From assembly GCA_020184695.1 (NCBI GenBank), contig JAANOX010000022.1, positions 1 through 64,000 of the forward strand: DNA of 64,000 bases, in the 5' to 3' direction. Positions 836 to 36,189 of the stretch are shown here, piece after piece. The notes beneath the pieces are model-generated. The model did not search any database and was not told where the DNA came from. It saw only the letters and a list, made by a program, of their open reading frames with translations. Positions within the stretch are counted from its first letter, which is position 1. Each line of letters opens with the position of its first letter. The DNA comes from Histomonas meleagridis 2922-C6/04-290x. Its lineage: Eukaryota; Protista; Parabasalia. Made by a program: the position numbers and the translations under genes.

Positions 836-1453
836 AGTCTTTCACATATGAATAAACATCGAAGGTGAATAACAAATATTTTTGTTTCAATACATAGTTT
901 TGAGATTTAGTAATATACTTTCAATGACAAATGCATTCATTGCACGATAAAAAGAACAGAAAGCTCAAGGAAGATAAATAAATATTTCCATTCTAATAAA
1001 ATAGTATATAAAAGCTTTGAAATATTCAGATTTGGTGATAATACAATTATCTTTGGCTCTTCAAAGCCTTGTTTTGGTCTGAAAACGAGTGACAATCAAT
1101 TTTAAAACACTATGGTAGATAGTTAACTAAATCAGCAAGTATAATATTTTGTTAAATACTTTTGTGTTTAAAGCGGCGTTCATATTTAGCTCTTGGTAAA
1201 CAAAAAGGTTCTTTCATTATTTTCTATAAATCTTCGTGAAGTCCAATCATTTGATAAGTCCGAGAAACATGTTTTAGAAGAAATGGTTTTTGGCGCTCAA
1301 TAAACTGCGAACGAACTATCAGAAAAAATATTTCAATGCATTAATTCAAAATATTCTATGAGGTCTTTGATGCCGAAATTTCAATTAAACATCACTTGTT
1401 CTATGTAATTTTAAGTTTAATTTGTTAAAAGTTCATTGCGAAATTTTTATAGT

Positions 1454-1760
1454 CCTAAAAATTTCCTTGAATTGACAGAAGGTTTCATTGATATTGCAAA
1501 AATACTTTTAAAACATGACCAAATCGATGTTAATTTAAAAGTAATTTAAATATTTTATTCGAAGATTATTTTATTAATTTGATGTTTTAAGATTATATCA
1601 GGTATTCAAATAAAGCAAGAATTACAGCAATCATGATTGCTGCTTCGAATGAGCATAATGAAATTAATATGCAAATATCTTTCTTGGGTGGAAGGATATT
1701 GATCTCAATGATCCAAATATTTGCATTATCCAATTAATAATCTTCCTAAAAACAATATAT
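1454..1760 (+). pseudogene. Degenerate ankyrin-repeat remnant with a 77-nt spacer
   Basis: Reads ...EGFIDIAKILLKHDQIDVNLKVI, then a 77-nt spacer (1547-1623), then TAIMIAASNEHNEI; no intact upstream ORF. Confidence 0.6.
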
Positions 1761-2070
1761 TTTTCTATATTTTTAATGTTTGAAAGTTCATACGATTCTT
1801 AATTTATTTTTAATTTTATTAGAAGAAATGGATTTAATGAAATTTCAGATAAGGTAATTTTTGTTCAACAAATTTTTTATTGTAGTGAATTTTTTCTTAC
1901 TGAGCATTTCAGAGATGTTCAAAATAACACTCAAGTGAGTTATTTATACAAAAAAGTGTCAGAACTGTAAAATGGGGCATCCTGTTGTTTAATCGTATTT
2001 CAATTTAGACAAGAAATATTTCAATTGAAAAAGTGGGTTGATTATCAACCAAGAAGCCAAGCAAAATCAA

Positions 2071-3300
2071 ATGAAAATCAACCCAAATATTCCAAAATAT
2101 AGAGCCCTTCTTGATGCATACCTTAGTGTTTGCGAATCAGATATAATGAAGTATGCAGAAAAAGAAAAACAATTAATTCTTCCTATTCCTGAACAAGATT
2201 TACTTCAAAAACTTTTCCAAGAAGTCAAAAATCTTTTTATGGCAGAGTCTACAATGCTTGAAATTAGGTCTCCTTGTATTATTGTTGGTGACATTCATGG
2301 ACATCTTCTTGATCTCTTACGCATTATCCAAAACTTTGGGTTACCAGGACCTATTCGTTATGTATTTTTAGGGGATCTTATTGACAGAGGAGAGTTTTCA
2401 ATTGAAACTCTTATAATCGTTTTTTTATTGAAAGTATTATTTCCTACACGAGTTTTTATCATTCGTGGCAACCACGAATTTGCAACCCTTTGTAGCCAAT
2501 GTGGTTTTCTCAGTCAAATGTTTGCTTTTTTTGGAGATATGTTATTATATTATCTTTCAATACAAACATTTGAATACATTCCACTTGCAGCTCTCATTGA
2601 CAAACAGATCCTCTGCATTCATGGAGGTCTTGATCCTAATCTTAATAATGTTGATCAGATTCGTTCAGTCAAACGACCTATTTCTGAGTTCACAGGAGAT
2701 TTTATAGATTCACTTGTGTGGAGTGATCCAACAGATAACATTGATGACTTCGAAGTGTCAAGTCGAGGCTCAGGGTACACTTTTGGGTGTAAAGCATTGA
2801 AATCGTTTCTATCGTCCAGTAAAATTGAGATGCTTGTTCGAGGCCATGAATGTGTTTTTAATGGGTGTAAGTATCATTTTGATGGCCGCCTTGTGACAGT
2901 TTTCAGTGCCTCTAATTATTGTGGGATGGTTGGTAATGAAGCCGGTGTATTAGTCATTCATAGTCCCATGAATTATGAAGCCAAAACATTTCCACCATTA
3001 AAATGGTTGTTACGTACAGAAGTTACATTCATTTCGATGAAATCGAATGTTACTAAAAAGGTGATCACAAAGTCCGAGATCATCCGCACAAAGAAAACAA
3101 GAGAATCTGCTTCAACGCGTCCATTGCATCCAATTGTAACAGCGCCAATGAAAGAGACAACGAACTCCGCAAGACAACTTCCGAAGCTGGAGCAGAATCA
3201 AAGTCCACGAAAAGAACAGAAAAGAACACAACAGAGAACAAGAATAACAAAGTTAACACGACACGCCGGAACGCCGAAGTTGTTGTTCCAGTTTTCTTAG
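2071..3300 (+). CDS. PPP-family (PP1-like) Ser/Thr protein phosphatase with basic C-terminal tail
   Basis: Motifs GDIHG, GDLIDRG, RGNHE, HGG, RGHE, FSASNY; first ATG at 2071 (the ORF track starts at TTG 2038). Confidence 0.93.
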   Translation: MKINPNIPKYRALLDAYLSVCESDIMKYAEKEKQLILPIPEQDLLQKLFQEVKNLFMAESTMLEIRSPCIIVGDIHGHLLDLLRIIQNFGLPGPIRYVFLGDLIDRGEFSIETLIIVFLLKVLFPTRVFIIRGNHEFATLCSQCGFLSQMFAFFGDMLLYYLSIQTFEYIPLAALIDKQILCIHGGLDPNLNNVDQIRSVKRPISEFTGDFIDSLVWSDPTDNIDDFEVSSRGSGYTFGCKALKSFLSSSKIEMLVRGHECVFNGCKYHFDGRLVTVFSASNYCGMVGNEAGVLVIHSPMNYEAKTFPPLKWLLRTEVTFISMKSNVTKKVITKSEIIRTKKTRESASTRPLHPIVTAPMKETTNSARQLPKLEQNQSPRKEQKRTQQRTRITKLTRHAGTPKLLFQFS

Positions 3301-3371
3301 TTTGAGAGTTGTCAATTGGCAATTTATTGTAAGTAAAGTGTTAGTTATATTTGTAATTCTTTATTTAAAAT

Positions 3372-5403
3372 TTAAGTAAATTGTTCATTTCCATTTCGAT
3401 TAAGAAGTAACTGAACAATTTCTGTATGATTAAACTCTTTTGCACGCATAAGTGCTGTTTCATTTGATTTGAATGATCTCCAAATATTGTTGTAAAATTC
3501 CAAAATATTATAACAAATTTCAAATAAAATATTTAAATATTTTTGGCATTGATGTTAATTCCTTCTTGTTCAAGAAGCATTTTGAATATTTCTATGTTGC
3601 CAGTTGCTGATGCAAACATAAGTGCTGTCTCATATTCTATTAATAATTTCCAATTATTCTTTTGAAATATAAAATTATTATAATAAACACCAAATAAAAC
3701 AAGCATATATTTTCAGCATTGATATTAATTCCATTTTTTTCAAGAAGCATTTTAACTATTTCTGCATGACTATTTATAGTCGCAAGTATAAGTGCTGTTT
3801 CAAATAATTTAAATAATTTCCAAGTATTATTTTGAAATATAAAATTATTAAAATAAATACTAAAGAAAACAAATAAACATCTTCAGCATTGATATCAATT
3901 CCTTCTTGTTCGAGAAGTAATTTAACAACAACTGCATGACCTTTAGCAGATGCTTTTATAAGTGCTGTTTCAAATAATTTAAATAACTTCCAAATATTAT
4001 TTTGAAATACAAAATTATTAATATAAATACTATTTAAAACAAATAAATATCTTCAGTATTAATATCAATTCCTTTTTGTTCAAGAAGCAATTTAACGATT
4101 TCTATGTGACCATTTTCAGATGCTAACATAAGTGCTGTTTCAAATGACATAAATAACTTCCAAATATTATTTTGAATTATGAAATTATTATAATAAATTT
4201 CAAATATTATAAATAAATACCTTTTGCATTGATATCAATTTGTTTATGATCAAAAATATATTTAATAAGTTCAATATTTCCTGATTTTGATGAATAAACT
4301 AAAATATCTTCTGGAATTTCATGTTCTTTAACAAAATATTTTATAAGAAATATATTCCCTATTGTTGCTGATTCGTTGATAATATCATTTGTGATTTTCA
4401 TTCCTCTTCCAATTAAAAATGATAAAATTTCATAGTTATGATATGATATACATTTCTTTCCTAACTCCTCTAAATTGTTCATTCTAACAATTTCAGATAT
4501 ATAACGAAAAACATCATTTCGATGAAACATAATTGCTGCTTCATATGCATCTTCAAATGATGAATGATTTTGTTCACATAAATGAATGATCTCTTCATTT
4601 CCACCTGCAACTGCATATTTACCTGTATTTTCTACTTTTGCACCATTCATAAGTAAATATTTAAAACATTTGACTGATGAAAAAAATGCTGCATAATCAA
4701 TTAATGTAACATAAGGATAAACTTGATTAACAAATGAACACCTTTCATAAAGAGATGGTTGAATATGTTGATTAAAATTAAAATTATTTTGTGAAGATAT
4801 CTCTTGAAGTTTTTCTATTTCATCATTTCGAATTATTTTCGCTATTTCACTTGGATTATGGCCTTCTTCAATTAATTTCTTATGAAGTTCAAAATTGTTC
4901 TTTGAAAGTTCTTCGAAATTTTCTAAAAAAGCTTGACAAAATTCATCATTATATATTACTTTATTTTCTTTTTCTGTTTTATAATGCGCAAAATATTTTG
5001 ATATTTTGCTTTTAATGATATTTTTATCAATTAAATTTCTTTCAATCATTTTTTGAATTAAATAAAGTGATTCTTGTGAGTTATTTCCATTTATATAATT
5101 ACCAAATATTTCTAAAATTTTAGAATTATTAGAATTGATTTCTTCTTCTTTTGTTTGAATTGCTATTAAACAATTTAAATATATATCAACATCATTTACA
5201 TATTTTGTAACCAATAATGAATAAATAATTTGGCTAACCATAAGGTTAAAAGAGTAAGTGTAGTTATGATCATAAAAGTCAACGAACAAATTAACAGTTT
5301 GCATTATGTTTACTTTATTCAGAGAAAAAATAACACTTTGGATATTTTGAAGCATTTTCATATAGTTTAATTTTGTGGATTGCTTTTCTTTTTTTGTATC
5401 CAT
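3372..5403 (-). CDS. DUF3447/ankyrin-repeat gene (locus A), ankyrin array interrupted by five 77-nt spacers
   Basis: ORF 4207-5550 (ATG at 5403) has the LIDYAAFFSSVKCFKYLL..GKYAVAGGNEEIIHLCEQ core; downstream open 93-nt blocks encode TALxxA.xxGH.EIVKLLLEQ.GIDINAxDI; the last block ends ...NGNEQFT-stop at 3372. Confidence 0.85.
3459..4215 (-). repeat. 170-nt periodic array (93-nt ankyrin block + 77-nt spacer), locus A
   Basis: AGTGCTGT (reverse complement of Thr-Ala-Leu codons) at 3451, 3621, 3791, 3961, 4131; spacing exactly 170. Confidence 0.95.
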
Positions 5404-6164
5404 GAAAGATTGTGATATGAAATCTGAATAGAGTTGTAAGAAAAAATAAGCAAAAATAAGTTTAATTATGAAAAAGTGGGAAATTGACAAATTTACGTCA
5501 AAATTTGAATAAATAATTATCACTTTTTCAATGTGATGTATTTTGCCCACTGATCACTTTTTCATATTTAATTTGTATTTTTGCCCACTTCTCCCTCGTG
5601 TGAAAGGATAAAATAAACGGTTTTATCGATATTTATCGATATTATACTGATAAAAAAGTGACAATATGCATTCAAAATTTTCATATCGTTCTGAACGATA
5701 GTATTTAAAATTTCATCATAAAAATAAAAATATCTTGTGAAAATGGATATATATTTATGCTAAATCAAACTGATAGTAATTACAATCTAAGGAGGTTATA
5801 TTTTCTATCTTATTCAAATGGTATATTCATAAAATTGATTTTCGAAAATTTATAAGCATTAATGAGAATGCTATCAAGATAAAGTAGTCTAATTGTGGTC
5901 ACACATTTAGTGCATTTGCGATTAATAATCAATTTCAAACATCGCGAAACTCCACATTTTTTCAAAAAGTGGTATCGGTCGGTAGTATTTTAGTGTACTA
6001 TTACTTGTTGTTACTTTTTAAAATATCTACTTTTTGATTATTTCATTAAAATAATTATCGCTTTGCTCAAAACGTACTTTGACATAATGCTAATATTGCA
6101 AATTTCATATGATGAAATTGAATATAATTATCAGCCCTCATATAAAACGATTTAAATTAATGTA

Positions 6165-9393: not shown

Positions 9394-9706
9394 TTTTTGC
9401 TTTGTTTCAAATAATCATTTTTTGAAATATTAAAATTTCTATCATTAATAAATCCAATGTTTACATAGATTTCATTCTGTGCAATATGTAAAGTGATATC
9501 CGACTGTCGGATTTGATTATATTCGGGTAGAATTTTGATTAACTAAATATGAATAATATTTGCAAATATTTTCATATCCATTGCGCGTTGGAAAGGCTAG
9601 ACACTTACTTTCATTAAAAATATTTTACTTATAAAATTGTAAGTGATACAACCATTGTTTGACAAACTCCTTTTTATTCAATTAAAAATTAATTGATAGC
9701 AAATAT

Positions 9707-12055
9707 TTGACAGGTTCTTTTTTTTTTTTGAAAAGGAACAAACATTGTGTTAATCCCCTACAGCTTCTTAAATCATTATACCAAATAATTTTCAGTATAA
9801 ATCCCAACTGTATTGAAAATTGTGCCGATTTGTTAGTCGAAATTTTTGATAATAAATATCCCTTTTCTTTTAATTATGCAATTTGTCAGATTATTTATTC
9901 ATATCTTATAATCAACATTGAAAAGGCAGAACTTTGTTTTGATTTATTAAAAGTTATTCAATCAAAAGAAGAAAATATTAAAGAAGAAACTCAAATTCTG
10001 AATATTTTTTCACAATTTCTTTTAGATTTAAATACGCAAGAATCAAATATCTTGTTGTTACAGATGATTGATAATAATTTAACTGATTTAACGATTCTAG
10101 AAAATAGTGATTCTTTTTATTTCATTCAGTACAAAGACAAATATGAATATGAACATATCATTAGATTATTAGTAAATAAATCTTGTGTTAATTTAGATGA
10201 TATTGATTCTTTTATGGAAGATGATTTTGCACTTCATAAGAAATATGTTAAAGAAGGAGTCAATCCGGATGAAATAGCAACAATAATTCGGAATGATGAA
10301 ATCGAAAAACTTCAAGAAATATCATCACAAAATGGTTTTAATTTTAATCAAACAATTAAACCATCACTTTATGAAAGATGTTCATTTATTAATCAAAAAT
10401 ATGTTTCATTAATTGATTATGCAGCATTTTTTTCTTCAGTTAAATGTTTTAAATATTTACTTATGAATGGTGTAGAAGTAGAAAATACAGGTAAATATGC
10501 AGTTGCAGGTGGAAATGAAGAAATCATTCATTTATGTGAACAAAATCATTCATCATTTGAAGGTGCATATGAAGCAGCAATTATGTTTCATCGAAATGAT
10601 GTTTTTCATTACCTTTATGAAAATAAACTTGCGCCTGATATTGGTATAACACAAACTCTTTTAGAAAGTAAATGTCTCGAATTTTGTAATTATGAACTTA
10701 TAGAATTTGTAGAAACGAACTTTACTGAAAGTAATAATGTTAAAGAGAAAATTTTGTGCGAAATTCCTGCTTTATCTATGAATATATATAACGTTTTATA
10801 TCTTTATGCAAAGAAAAAATTATCAGTTAGTAAATTTATAGAATTACGGAATTATGATGTTGCTCAATTTATACTTGATCATAAACTTGTAAACATTTAT
10901 AAAAAAAATAATTATTTAATATATTTCTCGTTGTTTTGATTTTTTTCTTGTTTATTTGTAATCATTGGATTTTTCTGATTGCATTTGAAACATATCTCAT
11001 GAAAGCATGCAGAAACGATAAATCAAGAATTGTTAAATTTCTTCTTAATAAGAAAATTAATATAAATGCTAAAACTATTTGTTTTATCTTTTTGTTGTTT
11101 TTCAAGATTTAAATTTTGCTTTTAATTTTTGGAGTTATTTTTACCTATTTACTTGGTTTAAAACATCATTCATAATCCCACAAATGCATCAAGTTCTTCC
11201 TTAATTCTGAATGTTTTTTTTTAGATATTTAATATTTTTTTAAATTATTTAAGACTGCTATTATGGAAGCATGTAGATATGGAAATTATGAATCCATTAA
11301 ATTCCTTTTACAACAAAATAACATTAATCTTAAGTTAAGAAACATTTATTTATTCATATTTGGTATTTATAAATAAAATTATGCGTTTCAAGTTCATGTT
11401 TAATATTTATTTATATTATATATAACACCACTTATGATGGCAGCGTTAGGTGGCAATGCCAAAAAATTTAAGTTACTTCTTGAACACGAAGGATTTGATA
11501 TGAATGATAACGATATTTTTTTTATTTTATATATTATTTATTTAATTATTTTGTTGTTATTTCAATATAATATTTTTAAATCAAATAAAATTGTTTTTGA
11601 CGATGTTATCAATAATTACCGTATAGAAATTCTTAAAATCATTCTTGAACAAGAAGAATTTGATGTTAACACGAAATCTATTTATTTGTTTTATTTAATA
11701 TTTGTTTTAATAATATGATATTTCAAAATAATATTTGGAAATAATTTAAATTATTTAAAACATCACTTATTTGGGCATCTTCAAATGGTCATACAGAAAT
11801 AGTCAAATTGCTTATTAAACATGAAGGAATTGATGTTAATGCTAAAGATATTTATTTGTTTTATTTAATATTGCGGATAAAGCACTTTTTATGACAAATG
11901 ATATTGAAATTATTAAACTGTTCATAATGTATAAAGTTTCGGATATTTTAGATGAAGATATTCAAGTCCTATTGAAAAATGTTTCAGAAGAAGATGCTAA
12001 TGAAATAATGAAATTACTTAATAAGAATCCAAATAAGAGATCTGACGTTTATTAG
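9707..12055 (+). CDS. DUF3447/ankyrin-repeat gene (locus B), partly degenerate array; may be a pseudogene
   Basis: ORF 9707-10939 has the DUF3447 core but no good ATG (poly-T run near 9717-9729); ankyrin blocks at 10990, 11254, 11425, 11590, 11760; spacers of 77, 83, 78, 72, 77 and 26 nt. Confidence 0.65.
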
Positions 12056-16706: not shown

Positions 16707-16812
16707 TATTGATGCAAGGAATCGAACCTTGATTACGCTACTCATTTTCACATTCAAAATTGAAGTGATTACAAATAAGAAATGCGTGCCCTACCCATTA
16801 GACGACATCAAT
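16707..16812 (-). tRNA. tRNA-like gene copy 1 (apparent anticodon CTT, ~33-nt insert after position 37)
   Basis: 7-bp acceptor ATTGATG/CATCAAT, T8, A14, G18G19, T-arm CAAGG-TTCGATT-CCTTG, discriminator A, followed by TTTTTT; anticodon stem imperfect. Confidence 0.65.
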
Positions 16813-17379
16813 TTTATTAAAATTTTGCATTTGCTTTATTTCATATCATGTCGTTGAACAAACTTTTTTATGGTGATCATTCAAATATTTTTTTTAAAAC
16901 AAATATTGAAATTTTCTTTGTTGTGTTTAAAATGTAAGACATGATTTGGATATTGCAACAATTATAAATATTAAATGTAATATTTCAAAACTACTACGAA
17001 CTCTTCTACAAAGTTTTGACATATGTAATATGTGGTTTTTGCAATATATGTAATCTATCTGATGATATCAATATTTTGTTTACTTTTTTATATAGAGTCG
17101 CCAATAAGTAATAATATTCCAGAAACAAATCATATTGCAAAAAACATTAATATATATAAATTAGATTTATTCATAAAAAAAAATATAGAAAAATAAATTC
17201 TATAGAAGATTCAAAATGAATTAATTATAGTTTTAGTCTATAGATCAAATATTATGAATTAGTCTCGTTAGAATATTTTTCTAGAACTCAAAACATCGTG
17301 TTGAAGATTTCATTTTCAAGATTACTATTTAAATAAATATAATGGAAAAGAAAGCGGAGTTATTATGTTCCGAAACACA

Positions 17380-18030
17380 TTTAGAAATAAAAATGTATTT
17401 TGTGTTTTAGTTTTTGGTATAATTTTTCATTTTTATGTAGTTGTGAATTTAGATATTTCATTATTTCTTTCCTATAAAAATAAATTTCAAATAAAATATA
17501 TTAATATTATTAGAATTAACTTTAATTCCTTCTTGTTTATGAAGTAATTTAGATATTTCTAATTTACCAATTTCAGATGCTTTCATAAGTACTGTCTCAA
17601 ATTTGACAATTATCAATTTAGTTCATTATGCATTTTATTGAAAAAAAGAAGCCAACATTTTATATACAAATTATTTAGAAACAATCCAAATTAAAGAAGA
17701 AGAAATATCTCAAAATTATTTAATTTTTTGCTAGCTATATTCGTACATTAATACCAATTCACAAGAAGCATTTTATTTAATTAAATAAGAGAAAATGATA
17801 GAACGAAATTTAATTGATTCTAATATTACAAAATATTTTATACATTATAAAAATTAAACAAACGGCATGTTCAATTCATCATTTAAAGATGCATATAAAA
17901 TATTATTTGAATCCCATCAAAATGATATCTCTAAATATATTTAAGAAAATAAAAATATGAAACAAAATGACATTAATATGAAATTCAGATTAATATTTCG
18001 ATATTCTAAAATAATATTTGGAAATTATTT
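17380..18030. pseudogene. Scrambled DUF3447/ankyrin gene remnants
   Basis: Minus-strand ankyrin block TVLMKASEIGKLEISKLLHKQEGIKVN (~17510-17600); plus-strand fragments resembling IQTKEEEI / MIERNLID / SSFKDAY, and a spacer-like ...AAAATAATATTTGGAAATTATTT; many stops. Confidence 0.55.
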
Positions 18031-18437
18031 GTTGTCTATACATTAAATGTAAACATTAACAGGGCCACTAGTCTAAGTGCTGACAGTATTACTTATTATG
18101 TCTTAAGTTATAAAGGTCAAACAAAACAAACAGAAAATGCAGCATGTGCATCACCGTTTTGCTTGAAATAATGAAATTTAATAACTTCGGAAAAGATGAA
18201 CTTGGAATATAAGTTTCAGATAAGTCTATTTCATTAAGAAATGCTATAGTCGATATAAATAATTAAGATAATGGAGTATTACATCAGTCGGTATTCAATA
18301 CAAAAAATACACCATTTACTTCAGTAGAAAATTAACGATAATTTGAATGAATTGAATTTCATTTTTTTATCTCTTTTTATTTAATTTTTACATAAAATTT
18401 TAAATTTCAACAAAAAATTAACAAAAAATGGAAAAAA

Positions 18438-18542
18438 TATTGATGCAAGGAATCGAACCTTGATTACGCTACTCGTTTTCACATTCAGAAATGAAGTGAT
18501 TGAAATAAGAAATGCGTGCCCTACCCATTAGACGACATCAAT
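18438..18542 (-). tRNA. tRNA-like gene copy 2 (32-nt insert)
   Basis: Body identical to copy 1; differences confined to the insert; oligo-T follows. Confidence 0.65.
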
Positions 18543-18861
18543 TACATTAAAATTTTGCATTTGCTTTATTTCATATCATGTCGTTGAACAAACTTTTTTA
18601 TGGCGATAATTAAAATATTTTTTTTTTAAAACAAAAACACATTGTTTGAGTTTAAATAAAAAAATTTTTTTTATTAGTTATCTACATTTCTACTCGTCGA
18701 ACAGTATCATTTCAATCATACCTTAATTTTCCAGAAGGTTGTGGTAACATTAAAATCGTTAAATTACTTTTTAAGAATGAAGTTATAAACATTTTACAAA
18801 GCTACAGATTTACAACCAATTGTTAATAAGATATTAACATCTGTAAAGAATTTTATGACGT

Positions 18862-19209
18862 TTATAAAAGTTTATCAATTAATTCCTTGATCTTTGGAAC
18901 ATTCGCTCCAATGACTTTCCCGATTGGAACTGTGTCATCAACTTTTTCATTCTTTTTAAAAAACTTAACATCTGGAATAAGATCAACTCCAAATTCATAT
19001 GAAAATTCTGGTGACTTATCAACATTTACTTTAAGGAATTCGACGTTAGGATATTGTTTAGCTATTTCTGGTAATGCTTTCCCAACAACTTGACAAGGAC
19101 CACACCAATCTGCATAAAAATCTAGTACAACAAGATTACTCGATTTTTTGATGATGTTTTTCAAATCTTCTTTCGTGCCTGAAAAATGTTTTAAATTTGG
19201 GAGTGACAT
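18862..19209 (-). CDS. trx: Thioredoxin (left-arm copy)
   Basis: 115 aa, DFYADWCGPC active site. Confidence 0.95.
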   Translation of the reverse strand: MSLPNLKHFSGTKEDLKNIIKKSSNLVVLDFYADWCGPCQVVGKALPEIAKQYPNVEFLKVNVDKSPEFSYEFGVDLIPDVKFFKKNEKVDDTVPIGKVIGANVPKIKELIDKLL

Positions 19210-19297
19210 TTCTTTTTTGAGTTTCTTATTTCTTATTTCTTACTCATCGTCAAACAAACATTGTCAATATTAAAAAATTCATTTTATATTTTATATT

Positions 19298-20762
19298 TTA
19301 TTCAGTATTTTTATAGTATTAAGTATTGTTTCATATTTAATAAAATGATTCAAAATAACTGAAAATCGTTCTTCATTATTAAGTTTAATCCATTCATTAA
19401 ATACAATATCTTGATATGTAAGTTTCGAATAACATTTTTAGAAAATTATTCACATTTTTTTACGTTTAGGATAAATTAATTTAAACCCTCCTCGTCGTTC
19501 TTTCTCTTCTAAATAATCTCGAATAATAGAAAAAAATCATTAAAAAAACTGGTGATAACCATGGATGTTCTTTAAAACTTTCGATTAATTCACGACGCGT
19601 TGAATCAATCGAATTTTCATTCTCTTCTTCAATTGTTTGAAATGATGGACATGGTGAAGGGTCTAAAACATTACATTCAACTATTCGATTAATTCGTAAT
19701 AAATCTAACATAAGTGGATATTTGATATTTTCATCAAGTTTAGAATTTTTGGTATTTAATGATGGTGAAATATTCATCTCAAGAATATAAGGTTTTAAAT
19801 TAGAATCAAGAATTACATCAAACCCATACATTTCATAACAAATATTCTTGTTTTTTTAATGTTCCCTTGATGAACTTTTCAAATTGCCTTCATCCCTGAT
19901 ATAGTAATCAAAATAATACTACGTTCGATTTCTTTCATAATTAATTTACTATTGATATTTTGTGTTTCTAAATATTGTAAAAAATATTGTAATGATAATT
20001 TAGAATTATTAATACTTTCTTCTTCTTTATTATTTTGAATAAATTTTTCATCTGTTTTATTAATTGAATAATTAGTTAAATGTGATCGTAAATCTTCAAT
20101 ATTATCAATCGAATATTGATGTGTAGCAAAACGAATTAATCCATTTTCATGAAGATAAATTCGAAGTGGATTTAATGATGTAACAAGAACATATAAACGA
20201 ATATCAAATTTACGTCCTGTAATTAAAAAAGGATTTATAAGATAATGTTGATAAATACCATTCTTAAATAATTTTGGTTTTTCTTTTGTATTTAAAACTT
20301 GAATACCAATCCCTCTTGTTGATGCTGATGGTTTAAATATAAAATATTGATATTGATCCCAATATTCATTTAATTTATTCTTATCTTTAGGATAAATAAA
20401 TGTTTCTAAAAAATATTGTGAAAAATCTTTAGTACGTGAATTAAGTTCTTCAATTCGTTTTTGAAATTCATCTTTTCGTCCAACTAAACGTGACCCAATA
20501 AAATGATTACTTTTTGATAATATTGTAATTTTTCATATTCTTCTAATTTAAATTGTCGTCCCCATGAAAAATTCCATCGATTTCCTTTTGTTCTTTGAAA
20601 ACCTGAATGTCGAAGTGCTTTTTTAGTCGTACGAGTACAAACTTTATTAATAAAATATAATGGTTTTGGGTTATGTTTAATATCTGGTTCATTAGGTGTT
20701 GGAATTTCATAATAACAATAAGGAAGTTTTACATTTTGAAAGAGTTGATATAAATTATTCAT
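19298..20762 (-). CDS. Tubulin-tyrosine-ligase-like (TTLL) protein, left copy with homopolymer frameshifts
   Basis: Fragments WNFSWG, (N)HFIGS..VGRKD, IFKPSASTRGIGI, YIINPFLITGRKFDIRLYVLV, EMYGFDVILDSNLKPYILEMNISPSL; reconstructed using the right-arm copy. Confidence 0.8.
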
Positions 20763-20844
20763 TTGAAAATAAATAATAATAATAATAATAATAAATAAAT
20801 AAACGTCTTCTTTATCAAACAAACATTGTTTAAATAAAAAAATT

Positions 20845-23800
20845 ATGGATTTTTTTAATCTTACAATACCACAACAAACAACAACAAATAACAACAACAA
20901 TAATAATGTTTCAACGAATCATCATTTTGATATTAATTTGTTTCGAAGTGAAATAAATCGAGAAGAAGAACAATCTTCACAACTAAATACTTCAAGTCAA
21001 GGAAATTTTTCAAATATAACAGAAGGAAATAATCTAAATCAACAACAAAATAATTTCAATAATTTTGGGAATCAAACATTTAATAACCAACAATCAAGAA
21101 ATTTTGGTGAACAAAATATTCAACAACAACAACAACAACAACTTCAAAACATTTTTAACAATCAAATGAACAATCATGCACAACAAATATTTGATTTTAA
21201 TAATCAAAATAATAACAAACAACAACAACAATTTGATTTTAACTTTAATCAACAACAAACAAATAATTACAATTTTACATCACAACGAAATTTTAGTGAT
21301 TTCAATTTTTACAAACAAAAATAATCAAAACCATTCATCACAAATTATTGATTTTAATTTGCCAACACAACAACAGCAACAACAATTTGATGATAAATCA
21401 TTTCAACAAAATTCAGAACAACAAATTATTGATTTTAATCTTAAAGAAGAAGAAAATTCACGAAATAAAACACAAAATTTTGAAATCAATTTTGGAATTT
21501 CAGAAGAACAAAATAAATATAAAATTCAACAACAACAAACGAAATCAAATGAAACAATAACAACAAATAATAATAATAATAATAATTTCAATTCACAAAA
21601 TAACACAGAAAATCAACAACGAAGAAAACGACGAAAAGTTCAACGGGAAACAACGAAAGAAACGAAAACTGAAAATAAATTTATGGAATTTAATGTAAAT
21701 CAAAAGCAAAACACAAATAGTAATTTCGAATTTCCGTCATTTGAACCAAATAATGCAAAACAAAACACAAATAGTAATTTCGAATTTCCATCATTTGAAC
21801 CAAATAATGCAAAACAAAACACAAATAGTAATTTCGAATTTCCATCATTTGAACCAAATAATGCAAAACAAAACACAAATAGTAATTTCGAATTTCCATC
21901 ATTTGAACCAAATAATGCAAAACAAAACACAAATAGTAATTTCGAATTTCCATCATTTGAACCAAATAATGCAAAACAAAACACAAATAGTAATTTCGAA
22001 TTTCCGTCATTTGAAAGTGGTAACAAACAGACATCGAATAATGATTTCGGGTTTTCAAGCATTGATGTTAAAGAAACAAAACAAAACACAAATAGTAATT
22101 TCGAGTTTCCGTCATTTGAAAGTGGTAACAAACAGAATTCAAATTCCGAATTTACGTTTCCATTGTTTGAACAAAACAATTCGAATGATAATAAACAAAA
22201 ACAAGAAGAAGAACGAAAATCAGCGAACAGTTCAGCCAAAGCGAGCCTTAAGTCATATGATATATTTCGGTTTGAAGAAATTGATACGAACGAAGAAAAC
22301 CAAAGTAATAAAACAAATACAAATACAATAGAAATGAACACACAGAACTCAAACAATGACTTCGGATTTCCTTCATTTGAACAAAATAATGTCAATAAAG
22401 ATGAAAAGTCTCCAGAATTTAATCAAAAGCAAAACTCGAACAATGACATCGGATTTCTTTCATTTGAAAACAGCAACAAACAAAATGCGAATAATGATTT
22501 CACGTTTCCTTCATTTGAACAAAATAATACAAAACAAAACTCAAATAACGACTTCGGATTTGCAAATCATGAAAATAATAAACGAAACTCGAACAATGAT
22601 TTTTGGATTTCCTTCATTTGAACAAAATAATACAAAACAAAACTCAAATAACGACTTCGGATTTGCAAATCATGAAAATAATAAACGAAACTCGAACAAT
22701 GATTTTGGATTTCCTTCATTTGAACAAAATAATACAAAACAAAACTCAAATAACGACTTCGGATTTGCAAATCATGAAAATAATAAACGAAACTCGAACA
22801 ATGATTTTGGATTTCCTTCATTTGAACAAAATAATACAAAACAAAACTCAAATAACGACTTCGGATTTCTTTCATTTAACCAAGATAAAGTAAATAAAGA
22901 TGAAAAGTCCACAGAATTTAATCAAAAGCAAAAGCAAAACGCAAACAATGAATTTACATTTCCAACATTCGAACAAAATAATACAAAACAAATTTCAAAT
23001 AACGATTTCGGATTTGCAAATATTGATAATACAAAACAAAACTCAAACAGTGACTTCGTATTTCCTTCATTCGAACAAAATGATATAAATAAAAAAATGA
23101 AATATCCGCCGGAAATAATCAAAAACAAAACTCAAACAATGAATTTGGATTTCCATCATTCGAAAGCAGTCGCAAACAAAATGCGAATAATGACATTGTA
23201 TTTCCAAATATTGATAACAAAGAAGCAAAGCAAACATCAAATAATGAATATATGTTTCCATCGTTTGAACAAAACAATTCGAATGATAATAAACAAAAAC
23301 AAGAAGAAGAACGAAAATCAGCGAACAGTTCAGCCAAAGCGAGCCTTAAGTCATATGATATATTTCGGTTTGAAGAAATTGATACGAACGAAGAAAACCA
23401 AAGTAATAATGCAAATACAAATGCAAATACAGTAGAAGTGAACATACAAAATGATAACAAACAAAACTCAAACAGTGAATTATCATTTCCAACATTTGAA
23501 CAAAATAATACAAAACAAAACTCAAATAACGACTTCGCATTTCCAACATTTGAAAATAATAACGACAATAAACGAAAATCAAATTGCGAAATTGAAAATC
23601 CAAAAGATGAAAACAAAGAAACGAAACGAACATCAAACAGCGATTTGTCATTTCCTTCAATCGAAGATAACAATAAACACAATCCAAATAATGAAATGAC
23701 ATTTTCACCGAATGAAAACATAGAAACAAAACAAAACTCTAATAACGATTTTGGATTTCCTTCATTTGAAAACAATAATAATAAACAACATTCAAGTCAT

Positions 23801-24532
23801 GAATTCACATTTCCAACATTTGAAAACAAAGAAACAAAACAAAACTCTAATAACGATTTTGGATTTCCTTCATTTGAAAACAATAATAATAAACAACATT
23901 CAAGTCATGAATTCACATTTCCAACATTTGAAAACAAAGAAACAAAAAGTTCAAGCAACGATTCGACATTTCCTTCATTCGAAAATAATAATAATAAACA
24001 ACATTCAAGTAATGAATTCACATTTCCTTCATTAGAAAACAAAGAAACAAAAAGTTCAAATAATAATTTTGGATTTCCTTCGATTGAAAGTAACAACAAA
24101 CAAAGCACAAACGATGAGAGCGCATTTCCAACATTTGAACTAAATGGCAACAAACAAAGCACAAGTAATGACTTTGGATTTGTTTCATTTGAAGATAACA
24201 ATAAACAAAGCACAAGTAACGAAATTACATTTTCAACAAATGAACAAAATCCAACGAAACGAAACGGAACGAAAGAAATCGAAACAAAACGAAATCCACG
24301 AAATGAAAATATAAATAAAGGAAACATACGAAAAGAAAACAAAGAAAACGTAAACATCAATACAAATCATTTAATTAATTTAGAAGAAGAGAATACGAAA
24401 GAAACGAAACTTTTCAAGATGTACATTAAAATTAATTTAAATAATAATTTTTGTCAATCGAAAGAAATTTCACCAATTTCGATTCCAACATTTCCAGAAG
24501 AAACAAATGTAAATATACAACGGAAAACATAA
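20845..24532 (+). CDS. ~1200-aa Asn/Gln-rich low-complexity protein with many F-x-F-P-[ST]-F-E repeats (left copy, apparent frameshifts)
   Basis: Overlapping ORFs 20845-21324, 21176-22621, 22356-23435 and 23252-24532 join at homopolymer slips; the right-arm copy is continuous over the first junction. Confidence 0.7.
21707..22014 (+). repeat. 54-bp tandem repeat (QNTNSNFEFPSFEPNNAK), five units plus a partial unit
   Basis: Units start at 21707, 21761, 21815, 21869, 21923, 21977. Confidence 0.92.
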
Positions 24533-24573
24533 ATAAAATTCATATTTATATTAAATGTTAAAAATATTTTTAT

Positions 24574-25083
24574 TTATTGAAATGGACAATTTGTGAAGTT
24601 TGGTGCTGTTACATTTCCATAATCTGTATAAATATTTTCTCCTTTGTAAATAGCGTCACCATTGTTATCAATACGAAGATCATAAAGCATCTTCTTCCAA
24701 TGTCGATTTCCATGATCAACTTCAAAGTCTTCACTCGTAGTATAATCTCCAAAATAAACACGATCACCTGCTTGATTATCAAGTGGTGGTTCTAAAAGTT
24801 CGATATGTTTATCATCTGGACCACAACCAAGAATAATCCCTTCACTAATTTCTCCTAAAATTTCGGTGGGTTCTGCATTTAAAAAAACACAAACATATTT
24901 CCCTTGAAGTTCTTCATGCGTATAAAATTTGCGTGCTGTACAAACAATATGCCGTGGACTTTCTTCTCCAACTTCAACTTCTAAACAATATAACTTTTGT
25001 GACCCTTCAATATTTTTAACTTCAACAATCTCACCTACACGACAATCAATAAATGTTGCTGCATCTGGAATTGATTTCGTCAT
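24574..25083 (-). CDS. Stand-alone tRNA-binding OB-fold protein (EMAP-II/Arc1p/Trbp111-like)
   Basis: IDCRVGEIVEV...KLYCLEVEVGEESPRHIV...VFLNAEPTEILGEISEGIIL...IELLEPP...GDRV. Confidence 0.82.
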   Translation of the reverse strand: MTKSIPDAATFIDCRVGEIVEVKNIEGSQKLYCLEVEVGEESPRHIVCTARKFYTHEELQGKYVCVFLNAEPTEILGEISEGIILGCGPDDKHIELLEPPLDNQAGDRVYFGDYTTSEDFEVDHGNRHWKKMLYDLRIDNNGDAIYKGENIYTDYGNVTAPNFTNCPFQ

Positions 25084-25174
25084 TTTAACAATTTAAAAAA
25101 ATAAATAAAAATAAAAAAAAAAATCCAATTTCTCTATCTTTGTTTGGACTTACTAATGAATTGTGATGTGAATT

Positions 25175-26351
25175 TTATCGATTGTGTTTTCGTTCATATT
25201 GTTGAATCCGACTAGTTTCATAAACTAAATTACGTTTGTTATTATTATTATTATTATTGTTTGTAATCGCTGTCTTAGGTCGAGATTTATTATTAATGTT
25301 CGAAACTTTCGCAATAATAACTTTGTTTTTTCGACTCGTTGAACGTGCTGAATATGGTTGAGCACGTGTTTCTTCTTGTCCATTTTGTTGTTCCCAAAAT
25401 TGTGATCGTTGTTCTAAATAATTAATGGTTTCTTTGCAACATTTTTTTCAATAATTTTATCTTGTTCATAATTATATTTATCTTCATTATGTGTTTCATT
25501 TTCATCATTTAGAATTGTCGTTATTTCTTCTTTTAAACCTTTCAAATATTCATAATCAACTAAAAGTTCTCCAAGAAATTGTCCTTTGTTCTTAGGATTA
25601 ATTGTTAATGGATGAACTTTTTCTGGTAATAATTCTTCAAGATTTTTCTTGTTCATATTGATTTTCTTCTTCTTCTTCATCTTCATTTTCTGATTCGTCA
25701 TTTCGTTTCTTATTCTTATTATTATGATGAAGATGTTTTTGTTTTCGAATTCGTGATGCTGAAAAATTAGGATTCGGTTGATATGTCTTTTCACCATTAA
25801 TAGAATCTAAGATAGCATGTTTACATTTAGTAATACCTTCACGAAAGCCTTGAATATCTTGTCGTAAAAATGATCCACGTTCAAAGAAAACTAATGCAAA
25901 CTCAAATTCTCCAATAGAAAAAAATGCTTCCGCTTTCGCTAATAATGCTCGTGTATCATTAGGTGATACTTGAAGAACTGTATTAGCGTCAATAATAGCT
26001 GAACGTGCATCACCAATTTGAATATAACAATTAGCACGATCAACATAAAGACTATAATCTTCTTTGTTAATATCAAGTGCTTTACTAAACGATTCAATCG
26101 CTCGTGAATAATACGAACGAAAATAAAGTGAACGACCTTCTGATGTTAATGCTTTATATTCTAATTCTTGCGCTTTTTCATGCGTAATCGGTTTATATTT
26201 GCGTTCTTGTTGAAAATATTCTTGACGTGGTGTTTCAATTTCTTCATATTTATCTTTTTGAATTGTAGGTAATAAATTCTTCCCTAACATTTTACTCGTA
26301 AGTTCTAATCGCATTTGATATGTTTTATTTTCACGAATTCTTGTTTTTCAT
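25175..26351 (-). CDS. TPR protein similar to the N-terminal half of TTC25/ODAD4 (left copy, frameshifts)
   Basis: TPRs plus KAEAFFSIGEFEFALVFFERG and LGELLVDYEYL...INYLEQRSQFWEQQ, recalled as conserved blocks of TTC25. Confidence 0.68.
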
Positions 26352-26955
26352 TCGATATTTTTTTGAATGTATGTTGATTAAATGTTTGATTATTTTATGA
26401 AAAGTGCATTTATTTTCAAGTTTTTTTAATTATAATATCCATGACAAATAAGAAAAATTATTTATTCATTTGATTACGATATTGATTTATTTTTAGACAT
26501 TTTCTTTTTTTCGTATATAAAAAATTACACCCATACCTGAAGCAATGAAGATAATCACAATCACAATAACTATACCAACAATCGCGCCTGTGCTAAGTCC
26601 AGAACTTTTAATATTATCATTACCTTTAATGTCATAAGTTCCTAATTTGGAAATTCTGATTCATGAATATTACATTTCGATTTTTGATTGATTTACTATC
26701 CTTATTTGATAAGATATTTGGCCAGATAACTATTTTGTCCAGAAGGCAAATTTTATGATATCATTTTTATTATAAGTTGTTAGTTCTAATTAACATTCTC
26801 TATTTTTTAAATTATATTCCAAACGAATATAAAAGTCTTGCACAAAAGGCAAGAGAACAAGTTCATCGAAGAATTATAAGAGTAAACGTGAACAAATATA
26901 TAAAAAAGGATTTTATTCAGAAAATGGAATTGAGTTTTTTTTAACAACAAACTTA

Positions 26956-29900: not shown

Positions 29901-30776
29901 TGTTTCCAGGAAGACAAGTACGTTCGATATCAAACACGCCAAATAATACATTATATTTTAAAATATAATCATTCAATATCTGCTATAGATGGACAAAACA
30001 TTGTTGAGCTTTCTCAAAATTCCCATGGTGATTATGTATTTAATTTAAGTAATAAATCTATAAATGATTATACTTTTGTAAGACATTGTCAATCTAACGA
30101 AGAAGCCAATTGCATGACAAATATAACATTAGGAAATAAAATTAATTTAATTACTTATGGTACCTCAGGTAAAATCAATGATTTTGATTTAAATGAAAGT
30201 TTAATTATAAATGGAATTAAATTAAATAGTGGGTTCACAAAACAAGTTGTATACGGTAGAGATTTTATCAATTATTCAAAGACATGGAATGGTTCTATTA
30301 CTACAAAAATAATTGAAAATGCTACTCAACTTATCATTAAAGCAATCGAATTAACAGATCATATTAAAATATCGGCTTTTATTGTTATTAATGGAACTGA
30401 TGAAGAGATCCCATTTAGTGTAAATAAATGGAATAAAAACATTGAAGATTTCCTTTGTGCATTAAAAGTTAAAAAATTAAATGATGGCTATAATTTAAGT
30501 GAAATAAAAATGGTATTAAATGGTACAATTTTGATTCCAAAAAAACTTTACCAATATGGAGTAACTGTTGAATATGATAAAGTTGTGGATTATCCTTTAG
30601 GCGATATTGAATGTGTAACTTATTACCCATATTATGACATTAAAGGTAATGATAATATTAAAAGTTCTGGACTTAGCACAGGTGCGATTGTTGGTATAGT
30701 TATTGTGATTGTGATTATCTTCATTGCTTCAGGTATGGGTGTAATTTTTTATATACGAAAAAAAGAAAATGTCTAA
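26956..30776 (+). pseudogene. Large single-pass surface protein gene broken into five ORFs (spacer of the inverted repeat)
   Basis: Collinear ORFs 26956-28572, 28554-28805, 28835-29395, 29396-29968, 30114-30776; ends GLSTGAIVGIVIVIVIIFIASGMGVIFYIRKKENV (TM plus short tail); breaks may be real or assembly errors. Confidence 0.6.
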
Positions 30777-30913
30777 AAATAAATCAATATCGTAATCAAA
30801 TGAATAAATAATTTTTGATATTTGTCATGGATATTATAATGAAAAACTTGAAAATAAATGCACTTTTCATAAAATAATCAAACATTTAATTAACGTACAT
30901 TTAAAAATATCGA

Positions 30914-32088: not shown

Positions 32089-32179
32089 AATTCACATCAC
32101 AATTCATTAGTAAGTCCAAACAAAGATAGAGAAATTGGATGTTTTTCGTCGGTTTTATTTATTTTTTTAAATTGTTAAA

Positions 32180-32691: not shown

Positions 32692-32732
32692 ATAAAAATA
32701 TTTTTAACATTTAATATAAATATGAATTTTAT

Positions 32733-36107: not shown

Positions 36108-36189
36108 AATTTTTTTATTTAAACAATGTTTGTTTGATAAAGAAGACGTTTATTTATTTATTATTATTATTATTATTATTTATTTTCAA

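Follow-up and report, generated by a model that had tools for sequence, protein, structure and literature searches.

The gene examined here lies on the minus strand, from 5403 to 3372, of the window, by which we mean bases 1-64000 of contig JAANOX010000022.1 of Histomonas meleagridis, a parasite of poultry. Its parts are given below in the order of transcription. U1 to U4 are the 17-nt units of each spacer, and the residues of the three triplets embedded in a spacer are bracketed within its loop.

4219-5403, minus strand: exon 1, with the ATG at 5403-5401, 395 codons for the DUF3447 core and the first ankyrin repeats; the last codon is GGT of I-N-A-K-G
4142-4218, minus strand: spacer 1, U1 4202-4218, GAA 4199-4201, U2 4182-4198, CAT 4179-4181, U3 4162-4178, GGA 4159-4161, U4 4142-4158; loop G-(E-H-G)-E-T-A-L
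4049-4141, minus strand: ankyrin block of 31 codons, E-T-A-L-M-L-A-S-E-N-G-H...I-N-T-E-D
3972-4048, minus strand: spacer 2, U1 4032-4048, AGT 4029-4031, U2 4012-4028, TGT 4009-4011, U3 3992-4008, GGA 3989-3991, U4 3972-3988; loop D-(S-C-G)-E-T-A-L
3879-3971, minus strand: ankyrin block of 31 codons
3802-3878, minus strand: spacer 3, U1 3862-3878, AGT 3859-3861, U2 3842-3858, TAT 3839-3841, U3 3822-3838, GGA 3819-3821, U4 3802-3818; loop D-(S-Y-G)-E-T-A-L
3709-3801, minus strand: ankyrin block of 31 codons, matched by RNA contigs X1 rec 2, X2 rec 9 and X4 rec 23 with 0 mismatches
3632-3708, minus strand: spacer 4, U1 3692-3708, GGT 3689-3691, U2 3672-3688, TAT 3669-3671, U3 3652-3668, GGA 3649-3651, U4 3632-3648; loop N-(G-Y-G)-E-T-A-L; 77 nt become 9 in RNA
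3539-3631, minus strand: ankyrin block of 31 codons, matched by RNA contigs from four runs with 0 mismatches
3462-3538, minus strand: spacer 5, U1 3522-3538, GAA 3519-3521, U2 3502-3518, GGA 3499-3501, U3 3482-3498, GGA 3479-3481, U4 3462-3478; loop N-(E-G-G)-E-T-A-L; 77 nt become 9 in RNA
3372-3461, minus strand: last ankyrin block and stop codon, TAA 3372-3374

When the units are removed as in this list, the spliced model is a clean ORF of 1692 nt with no internal stop, encoding a DUF3447-ankyrin protein of 563 residues. Pfam domains were scored on exon 1, which contains DUF3447 (4e-11) together with Ank_2, Ank_3 and Ank_4. The spliced repeats were judged from the model translation, in which the C-terminus consists of five 34-residue repeats with D/N-x-x-G-x-T-A-L loops. 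The product thus has the DUF3447-then-ankyrin layout of parabasalid DUF3447-ankyrin proteins.

Spacers or units of the same kind were found at several other loci in the window:

1544-1620, plus strand: 77-nt spacer (4x17+3x3) in an upstream ankyrin remnant; loop V-(E-D-G)-I-T-A-I
10910-10986, plus strand: 77-nt spacer in the gene at 9686-12055
11680-11756, plus strand: 77-nt spacer in the same gene; loop S-(N-D-G)-K-T-S-L
11850-11866, plus strand: single 17-nt unit of U1 consensus, directly 3' of N-A-K-D; PWM score 14.6
17473-17607, minus strand: related fragment
44853-44929, plus strand: 77-nt spacer in the gene at 43554-46192
45020-45076, plus strand: three 17-nt units separated by the codons TGT and GGA; GAA and an aberrant stretch of 117 nt (45077-45193) come next
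45194-45270, plus strand: by our own reading, a 77-nt spacer (4x17+3x3, with CAA, GAA and GGT) that precedes D-T-A-L-M-V-A-S; PWM hits at 45194 and 45254
45364-45440, 45534-45610, 45698-45774, 45868-45944 and 46038-46114, plus strand: five 77-nt spacers
53467-53543, minus strand: isolated 77-nt spacer with a truncated block, in a gene fragment
56653-56729, 56823-56899, 56993-57069 and 57163-57239, minus strand: four 77-nt spacers in a paralogous gene with 80% DNA identity to the gene under study

An earlier, sequence-only reading of this DNA had listed 18 spacers of exactly 77 nt, all at a single position within the ankyrin repeats of DUF3447/Ank genes. All 18 exist, with that length and at that position, but the register was 3 nt off, the true position being upstream in the sense direction: the ATT taken as an I codon opens the first insert, and each spacer as then drawn has 3 coding nt at its end. 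The list was also incomplete, lacking 53467-53543 (minus strand), 45194-45270 (plus strand), 45020-45076, 11850-11866 and 17473-17607 (minus strand). The window holds at least 84 of the 17-nt units, and a PWM scan showed that within it they are restricted to ankyrin genes; high scores outside ankyrin loops were intergenic or in low-complexity genes and joined no convincing ORF. A dynamic-programming gene parser recovered the clean spacers and mis-parsed the decayed ones, and was left out of the counts. When the lone unit at 11850-11866 is removed, a three-frame reading indicates that the frame joins a 62-codon ORF with its stop at 12053-12055. The block at 45611-45697 is 87 nt long against the usual 93 (two codons lost), and the spacers on both sides of it are still 77 nt.

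The best reading of each 77-nt spacer is 17+3+17+3+17+3+17 nt. An alignment of all 18 spacers as 4x17+9 needs no gaps, and 20-nt periods within them were found independently by TRF. The triplets at columns 18-20, 38-40 and 58-60 contain no stop (0/54), have a GC content of 0.39 against 0.02-0.17 in non-overlapping registers, and begin with G in 57% of cases. They are the least conserved columns of the spacer, read x-x-G in 15 of the 18 loops, and restore the canonical D/N-x-x-G-x-T-A-L loop. The units themselves are T-rich and follow the pattern RTTT-N9-ATTT, with R1 (71/72), T3 (68/72), A14 (61/72) and T15-17 (62-66/72) common to all four unit positions. Identity between genes is 0.71 at insert columns, compared with 0.58 at exon third positions, 0.53-0.55 at loop triplets and a composition expectation of 0.41, which contradicts the earlier impression that the spacer sequences diverge freely. 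The 170-nt tandem unit that contains the spacers repeats with 77-84% matches and 0% indels, whereas other repeats in the window have 4-10% indels.

The borders of the units are not those of the described spliceosomal classes. Their 5' dinucleotide is AT in 38, GT in 14 and AA in 11 of 72 units; at the 3' end, 58 units carry TT, 7 carry AT and none carries AG. Many units start with AT, but their consensus there is ATTTA and none ends with AC. The borders cannot be shifted to GT-AG without altering kept codons. A single GT..AG intron was considered and rejected, since such an option exists in only 7 of the 18 spacers, spans 11-86 nt and is never 68 nt; spacer 5 has none. The statement made from the sequence that no GT...AG pair restores the frame therefore holds for 11 spacers, and for the other seven it must be qualified by these sporadic options. 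ACTAAC, already said to be lacking, occurs in 0/18 spacers, and so does CTAAC.

The spacers are present in DNA. They are found in both long-read genome assemblies, which are 99.98% identical, and sampled words of the array 3372-4300 are recovered at a share of 0.82-0.88 from DNA runs. The corresponding share in RNA runs is 0.27-0.34, and about 63/170 = 0.37 would be expected if the blocks alone were kept. Contigs from four H. meleagridis RNA runs agree without a mismatch with 2061-3461, 3539-3631 and 3709-3801, and between these pieces the spacers are shortened. The 77 nt at 3462-3538 are replaced by 9 letters in X1 rec 2, X3 rec 15 and X4 rec 23, and the 77 nt at 3632-3708 by 9 letters in X1 rec 2, X2 rec 9 and X4 rec 23. 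The bridging contigs have mean depths of 28-94 and are codon-exact at two consecutive spacers across the four runs, in which the intergenic regions 1628-1941 and 5553-5700 have a depth of zero. Exon 1 is matched by RNA contigs at 4255-4443, 4415-4535 and 4817-5446, again with 0 mismatches. From 3461 the contigs cover the 3' flank without interruption and reach the convergent phosphatase gene. The runs carry the label 'RNA?' and the contigs are unstranded assemblies; because a bridging contig also spans the convergent gene, the transcript strand was deduced from the restored ORF. The joints are the best-supported ones listed, and among them two of the five spacers of the gene (4 and 5) are bridged, while spacer 1 is bridged by none of the contigs listed. 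In X1 rec 2 and X4 rec 23 the genomic match stops exactly at 3801 and is followed by 52 and 45 more letters, respectively. One 77-nt contig of X2 (3899-3975) enters U4 of spacer 2 by 4 nt, indicating that some unspliced RNA or DNA is present.

These results demonstrate that units are excised from transcribed RNA at two spacers, and by extension we infer the same for the remaining ones. The RNA pieces stop after the D/N codon and restart at the codon preceding T-A-L, and their ends are compatible with a 9-mer that has G first and A last, so that the nine kept letters are probably the three embedded triplets. The net loss of about 68 nt per spacer, predicted from the sequence, is what the contigs display, and the prediction that unprocessed RNA would be out of frame follows from 77 mod 3 = 2. 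The gene is expressed and processed, as had been proposed, and not a dead repeat. Since the spacers are missing from RNA and have neither GT-AG borders nor the trichomonad branch motif, the designation 'candidate new intron class' stands.

In the published H. meleagridis annotation, ankyrin proteins of this kind end at the first spacer. When exon 1 was searched for homologues, the hits were all paralogues or relatives of at most 65% identity, and every one stops at the first spacer. No hit corresponds to a gene of the window, so these homologues include no transcript-derived full-length protein. Exact look-ups with the neighbouring phosphatase product returned two NCBI assemblies or nothing, with no transcript-derived match, and a search with the 57-aa block ORF for the product of the bridging contig gave no candidate.

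We also compared relatives. Two metagenomic relatives (L003 and L004) have, at the level of sequence, the same 4x17 layout. In L005, from a metagenomic eukaryote, successive ankyrin repeats begin 116 nt apart (99+17) and 9/9 loops are 29 nt long. L010 and L011, from the same eukaryote, have loops of two lengths, 12 nt and exactly 29 nt (12+17). Several placements of the 17-nt insert within the 29-nt loops of L005, L010 and L011 yield plausible loops, and the 17-mers have their length in common with no obvious sequence. A further relative, L006, has an 84-nt spacer whose frame is open, so that it could be translated there. The lone and triple units of the window, together with the loops of L003-L005, L010 and L011, support 17 nt as an independent quantum, and the rule in the metagenomic eukaryote suggests that the phenomenon may be wider than one species. 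The sequence-only reading had envisaged a ruler acting on an element of strict length and free sequence. A single 77- or 68-nt element of that kind is not supported in Histomonas, where the fixed element is the 17-nt unit, four per loop, with RTTT...ATTT ends; the single inserts of the metagenomic eukaryote, as far as their sequences tell, appear to fit the description well.

Taken together, these data are best explained by serial excision of 17-nt units from DUF3447-ankyrin RNA with one-codon exons between them, a reading to which, as a whole, we give a probability of about three in four. Each of the five inter-repeat loops of the gene would be broken by four T-rich units, which would lie in phase 0 with single-codon exons between them and would be transcribed and then excised from the RNA. 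The three kept codons and the codon before T would rebuild the hairpin D/N-x-x-G-x-T-A-L. Because 17 = 2 mod 3, any unit left in would break the frame. Recognition may depend on length together with weak marks at the ends: RUUU on the 5' side and, on the 3' side, UUU preceded by an A at position 14. This A, which is conserved and lies four bases from the 3' end, would be a candidate branch point. The likeliest machinery would be a length-measuring form of splicing, probably by a strongly derived spliceosome working at minimal intron size. This is the weakest step of the mechanism, because the lack of AG ends and a GT start in only 14/72 units contradict all described spliceosomal classes. A 20-nt module of unit plus codon was probably duplicated in tandem to give the array, which would then have spread along with the duplicating ankyrin repeats.

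A broader claim can be put forward only tentatively, and we would not yet bet on it: that anaerobic protists possess a length-measuring, near-signal-free excision of 17-nt segments from RNA, distinct from all described intron classes. As one joint reading, such a system might be non-spliceosomal or a spliceosome working without GU/AG, would tolerate one-codon exons, and would operate in Histomonas and its relatives and, on free sequence, in at least one further eukaryote. In the literature we found no paper describing such a gene layout.

The units might instead leave the RNA by non-spliceosomal excision, with an endonuclease plus ligase, or a guide RNA, measuring 17 nt between weak U-rich marks. 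The architecture would be the same as in serial 17-nt excision by a derived spliceosome and the machinery alone would differ; its logic would be comparable to that of tRNA/BHB or IRE1-RtcB splicing. GT-AG, AT-AC and CTAAC are all missing, one-codon exons leave a spliceosome almost nothing to hold, and the 17-mers of the metagenomic eukaryote are alike in length only; these points speak for it. We nevertheless consider it rather unlikely. Folding of eight spacers with 10-nt flanks, a test in which MFE is weak on A/U-only sequence and trans pairing is outside its reach, gave z-scores of -1.9 to +0.8 with no common structure and no evident bulge-helix-bulge or paired stem-loops. Rfam gave no match in the spacers, and true spliceosomal introns of fixed 15-17 nt are known from Mikrocytos and Stentor (PMC10245619).

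We regard as improbable a model in which the nine kept letters form a single contiguous micro-exon flanked by one or two larger introns, as in 51 nt + ATATTTGGA + 17 nt or in a version that keeps F-G-x. ATATTTGGA is highly conserved and gives x-x-G at the right length, and the RNA as such shows only that 77 nt become 9. But the first 2-3 letters of ATATTTGGA are the same as the spacer start, so the RNA pieces would be 2-3 nt longer, with 6-7 letters between them, which is incompatible with the piece ends. The F-G-x micro-exon, an idea of the earlier reading, requires that ATT be kept by the upstream exon and the codon before T be lost, the opposite of what the pieces show. The model also leaves unexplained the 20-nt periodicity, the common RTTT...ATTT ends of the four sub-segments, the lone unit at 11850-11866 and the 12- versus 29-nt loops, and one would not expect a variable loop to keep its I-F-G nucleotides constant between diverged paralogues. 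The form with a 51-nt intron, the 9-nt ATATTTGGA and a 17-nt intron was thus rejected on RNA piece lengths, periodicity and lone units.

It is very improbable that the RNA comes from a spacer-less DNA template, either a processed or retro-copied paralogue or the product of ciliate-IES-like somatic excision, with the spacer-bearing locus silent. The spacer-less contig extends without a break into the 3' flank specific to this locus and across the neighbouring gene, all with 0 mismatches, and both the long-read assemblies and the array words of the DNA runs contain the spacers. Nuclear dimorphism is not known from Histomonas. Slightly less credible still is a recently amplified pseudogene repeat whose spacer length is fixed by common descent and whose RNA signal arises as an artefact of assembly or reverse transcription. 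In its favour, the 170-nt units are duplicated in tandem, decayed copies or fragments lie at 11077-11250, 53467-53543 and 17473-17607, and the published annotation ends the proteins at the first spacer. Against this, the spacer-less form recurs in four runs at the depths and with the codon-exact joints described above, and template switching would produce a one-step deletion between direct repeats, not a loss of 68 nt with 9 left. Blocks are open and loops canonical across paralogues only ~71-80% identical, and the same 17-nt rule appears in unrelated sequences of another organism. Translational recoding, a frameshift or ribosomal bypass over spacers kept in the mRNA, was offered earlier and has practically no chance of being right: some spacers are open in another frame, but the RNA itself lacks 68 of the 77 nt and runs at the word share of the blocks, three spacers begin with a stop in the incoming frame, and no single shift fits all copies.

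If confirmed, serial 17-nt excision would represent an intron-exon layout beyond current rules, with 17-nt introns that have neither GT-AG nor AT-AC ends, arranged in sets of four with 3-nt exons between them and repeated hundreds of times in a genome for which a maximum of one intron per gene was reported (PMC8529796). The layout raises the questions of how an exon of one codon is defined and joined in the cell and whether a spliceosome can act on length alone. Because the published proteins end at the first spacer, the ankyrin arrays of a large gene family are absent from proteomic, surfaceome and virulence comparisons based on them. Such units are invisible to standard gene predictors and spliced aligners, and hundreds of genes would be mis-annotated as truncated if a signal-free excision system is real.

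Several known systems resemble the units in part. T4 gene 60 and the byps of Magnusiomyces mitochondria also have frame-breaking inserts in a functional gene, but these stay in the mature mRNA, from which the units are gone. Ciliate IES are removed from DNA and bounded by TA; like those of Paramecium, the units are short, AT-rich, of constrained length and precisely excised, and interrupt coding sequence. Unlike IES, they are retained in the DNA that is transcribed, as the assembled genome and the words of the DNA runs show, and are missing only from RNA. Animal and plant micro-exons (3-27 nt) likewise go down to 3 nt and are spliced on both sides; they are flanked by long canonical introns and depend on enhancer complexes, whereas the 3-nt exons here alternate with 17-nt non-canonical introns, three per loop, in every ankyrin repeat. 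Euglenid non-conventional introns are also nuclear, leave the pre-mRNA and lack GT-AG borders. They vary in length and rely on pairing that brings the intron ends together, while the units are fixed at 17 nt and the eight folded spacers show no structure beyond that of shuffled controls.

Among spliceosomal introns, the units differ from the U2 type in having no GT/GC...AG ends and no parabasalid branch site, the sole branch candidate being A14 (61/72), and from the U12 type, with its ATATCC-type 5' site, TCCTTAAC branch site and AC or AG 3' end, in their ATTTA start and in having neither AC nor AG at the 3' end. Trichomonas vaginalis, of the same phylum, has 63 introns genome-wide with a conserved 5' motif and a CTAAC-containing 3' motif; type A introns are 56-196 nt, and the short type B introns have a mainly poly-T interior, the shortest being 23 nt (PMC12316389). 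The units are likewise very short, and type B shares a T-rich interior with them (PMC12316389), but they lack both motifs, are 17 nt long and number at least 84 in 64 kb. Introns of 16-17 nt in Mikrocytos mackini and of 15-16 nt in Stentor coeruleus are true spliceosomal introns with highly conserved sequences (PMC10245619). Those introns are scattered over ordinary genes and have canonical conserved splice sites, whereas the units stand four in a row with 3-nt exons, in this window only in ankyrin loops, and have RTTT...ATTT ends (AT/GT/AA...TT, never AG). The length of the units nonetheless falls in the narrow range of ~15-17 nt typical of ultra-short introns, and they share with those of Mikrocytos and Stentor an extreme and near-invariant length, removal from RNA, and a length that seems to be part of the signal (PMC10245619).

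The focal DUF3447-ankyrin gene runs from 5403 to 3372 on the minus strand, and five 77-nt spacers interrupt its ankyrin loops between 93-nt blocks. It consists of the following parts.
5403 (ATG) down to 4219, minus strand: focal ORF, matching DUF3447 (4e-11) and Ank families
downstream of the focal ORF, minus strand: tandem array with a 170-nt unit in 4.7 copies (Tandem Repeats Finder, TRF: 78% matches, 0% indels)

All 18 spacers listed by the sequence-only reading were present, each of them 77 nt long. The window covers bases 1-64000 of JAANOX010000022.1, a contig of GCA_020184695.1. This assembly and its sister GCA_020186115.1 agree at 99.98% identity across the first 6.3 kb, the spacers among them, and an exact protein look-up placed the adjoining phosphatase gene at the same coordinates in both. 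The GC content of the window is 28%, in agreement with the published genome value (PMC8529796). Published protein models of this ankyrin family end at the first spacer (P0013, for example, at ...I-D-I-N-A-Q-N-I), and the reference proteome therefore seems to lack the ankyrin arrays. The NCBI H. meleagridis models P0013, P0015 and P0018, named 'cask-interacting protein (caskin) 1,2', are without an ankyrin array.

Four RNA-labelled runs of the same organism (X1 to X4), in which about half of the gene's words are present, were aligned to window 1000-5700. The contigs X1 record 2, X3 record 15 and X4 record 23 (1.6-1.7 kb) and X2 record 9 (206 nt) matched 2061-3461, 3539-3631 and 3709-3801 with 0 mismatches. 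These pieces are separated by 9 letters in the RNA contigs but by 77 nt in the genome, and therefore the spacers 3462-3538 and 3632-3708 are each represented by nine letters, enough for three codons, a 68-nt loss that agrees with the net removal of about 68 nt predicted from the DNA. Exon 1 was also covered by RNA contigs free of mismatches. As a control against DNA contamination, the silent intergenic stretches 1628-1941 and 5553-5700 had a depth of zero in the same four runs. In the array (3372-4300), the share of sampled words present was 0.82-0.88 in DNA runs and 0.27-0.34 in RNA runs, where words lying wholly within the 93-nt blocks give an expected share of about 0.37. The very high depths and most of the joints in the alignment come from expressed paralogues with common short block segments, and the letters between those joints (reverse complements such as GTA-TAT-GGA-AAT and GCT-AAA-AGT-AAA-GGA-CG) are ordinary uninterrupted ankyrin loops. 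DNA thus contains the spacers and RNA lacks them, each spacer accounting for 68 nt of net loss. The 9-letter joints, the zero intergenic depth and the word shares thereby exclude both a dead repeat array and the ribosomal recoding that had been proposed beside a new intron class. Within 3300-3461, RNA contigs run unbroken from the plus-strand phosphatase gene (stop at 3300) into the 3' end of the minus-strand ankyrin gene (stop at 3372), and the 3' ends of these convergent transcripts apparently overlap.

When the 18 spacers were cut as 17+3+17+3+17+3+17 (the 4x17 model), the triplets between the units gave, among other loops, D|D-Y-G|K-T-A-L, N|G-Y-G|E-T-A-L and D|S-C-G|E-T-A-L, and none of the 54 loop triplets was a stop codon. 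Their GC content was 0.39 versus 0.02-0.17 in the non-overlapping registers, G was the first base in 57% of them, and their columns were the least conserved of the entire spacer. All four 17-mers have the pattern RTTT-N9-ATTT in common (a purine at position 1 in 71, T at 3 in 68, T at 4 in 62, A at 14 in 61 and T at 15-17 in 62-66 of the 72 units), and TRF independently found 20-nt periods within several spacers. On this model the spliced focal gene is one 1692-nt ORF that encodes 563 residues, five regular repeats of 34 residues among them. We strongly infer four separate 17-nt excisions per loop, with three triplets left. A split of the spacer into two introns, of 51 and 17 nt, around a contiguous 9-nt micro-exon ATATTTGGA did not fit the ends of the RNA pieces. 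The first 2-3 letters of a contiguous ATATTTGGA or ATAATTGGA equal the spacer start, so the pieces would extend and leave 6-7 letters between them; the 4x17 model predicts a 9-mer with G as its first and A as its last letter, so the pieces should not extend, and they did not. The companion idea of an F-G-x micro-exon requires that ATT stay and that the codon preceding T be lost, and the RNA pieces show the opposite.

The earlier statement that spacer sequences diverge freely did not hold, as unit columns were 0.71 identical between genes versus 0.58 at exon third positions; loop triplets reached 0.53-0.55, and composition alone predicts 0.41. No indel was accepted in the T-runs of 18 x 77 nt. 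The coding block 45611-45697 is 87 nt, two codons having been lost. Decayed copies carry indels, such as the 14-nt third unit near 11117-11130, which belongs to a decayed repeat (11077-11250) whose next block is cut short and contains a stop; the gene concerned (9686-12055) may be partly degenerate or spliced in another way. Three isolated fragments without a DUF3447 core look like remnants of the same gene family.
53467-53620, minus strand: ankyrin block-plus-spacer fragment
17473-17607, minus strand: ankyrin block-plus-spacer fragment
near 39500-39640, plus strand: mirror copy of the 17473-17607 fragment

The window also holds an inverted duplication (16890-26637 and 30632-40224; arms of about 9.7 kb, 94-98.5% identity, on either side of some 4 kb). 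Genes full of 54/102/108-nt repeats, which encode N/Q/F-rich low-complexity protein, lie in its arms. Three Rfam tRNA matches are 105-106 nt long, which implies about 33 inserted nt in each; none of the three was called by ARAGORN.
16707-16812, minus strand: tRNA match, about 39-40 bits
18438-18542, minus strand: tRNA match, about 39-40 bits, within the inverted duplication
38584-38688, plus strand: tRNA match, about 39-40 bits, within the inverted duplication

On the plus strand, 46702-49350 is a large ORF with 138-nt repeats resembling BspA-type leucine-rich repeats, then 18/54/90-nt T/K/N-rich repeats.

The 17-nt unit also occurs in other numbers.
11850-11866, gene 9686-12055: lone unit with the consensus of the first unit, after ...N-A-K-D
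45020-45076, gene 43554-46192: three-unit set

Without the lone unit, the frame continues into an ORF of 62 codons whose end lies at 12053-12055. In gene 43554-46192, a GC-richer 117-nt stretch (45077-45193), flanked by the three-unit spacer and a full four-unit spacer, stands in place of an ankyrin block; it has one open frame, is not ankyrin-like and gave no Rfam match. Two metagenomic relatives (L003 and L004, about 50% identity in the DUF3447 core) have the same 4x17 layout, L004 with one uninterrupted loop in addition. A contig from a more remote relative (L006, Logan SRR34776232, 1360-1460; 31% identity) has an 84-nt spacer between D and E-T-P-L that fits 4x18+12, four units of 18 nt together with codons. 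The frame of this spacer stays open, which would allow for translation as well as for excision. A 26%-identical match led to a metagenomic eukaryote (L005, L010 and L011; JGI Ga0074193, Ga0272380 and Ga0209639; JGI/ENA) with a GC content of 28-35%, contigs as long as about 290 kb and about 100 paralogues of an ankyrin family, most of whose called proteins end at the first 29-nt loop. L005 has ten 99-nt repeats spaced 116 nt start to start, and each of the nine loops measures 29 nt (12+17), with a frame rotation of 1-0-2; L010 and L011 carry 12-nt loops for the most part, plus three of exactly 29 nt. In these metagenomic contigs the 17-mers are dissimilar in sequence, and therefore their common length does not reflect recent common descent. 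This eukaryote is the most telling case for a putative stand-alone 17-nt unit.

The units begin mostly with AT (38), GT (14) or AA (11) and end mostly with TT (58) or AT (7), and none ends with AG. Neither ACTAAC nor CTAAC occurs in the spacers, as had been observed of the branch motif; the claim that no GT...AG pair restores the frame held in 11 of the 18 spacers. Frame-restoring pairs exist in the other 7, and none of them removes 68 nt. Folding of eight spacers gave z-scores of -1.9 to +0.8, and an Rfam search of the spacers returned no match. Strong matches to the unit motif outside the ankyrin genes of the 64-kb window joined no convincing ORFs. Recognition of a unit would depend on its length together with its RUUU and A14-UUU ends, and the array would have originated by a 20-nt tandem duplication and then spread with the repeats. 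As the machinery we prefer the spliceosome, used at its minimal span (roughly 45%); a different excision-ligation system is a somewhat less likely alternative.

According to the H. meleagridis genome paper, introns are scarce, with at most one per gene, and ankyrin is unmentioned (PMC8529796). Our full-text literature search yielded no account, for parabasalids, of 17-nt introns lacking GT-AG ends or of exons of a single codon. In T. vaginalis, 63 introns are active; they span 23-196 nt and carry a conserved 5' motif and a CTAAC-type 3' motif (PMC12316389). The shortest known introns, at 16-17 nt, are those of Mikrocytos; the cited paper describes them as spliceosomal introns whose sequence is conserved (PMC10245619).
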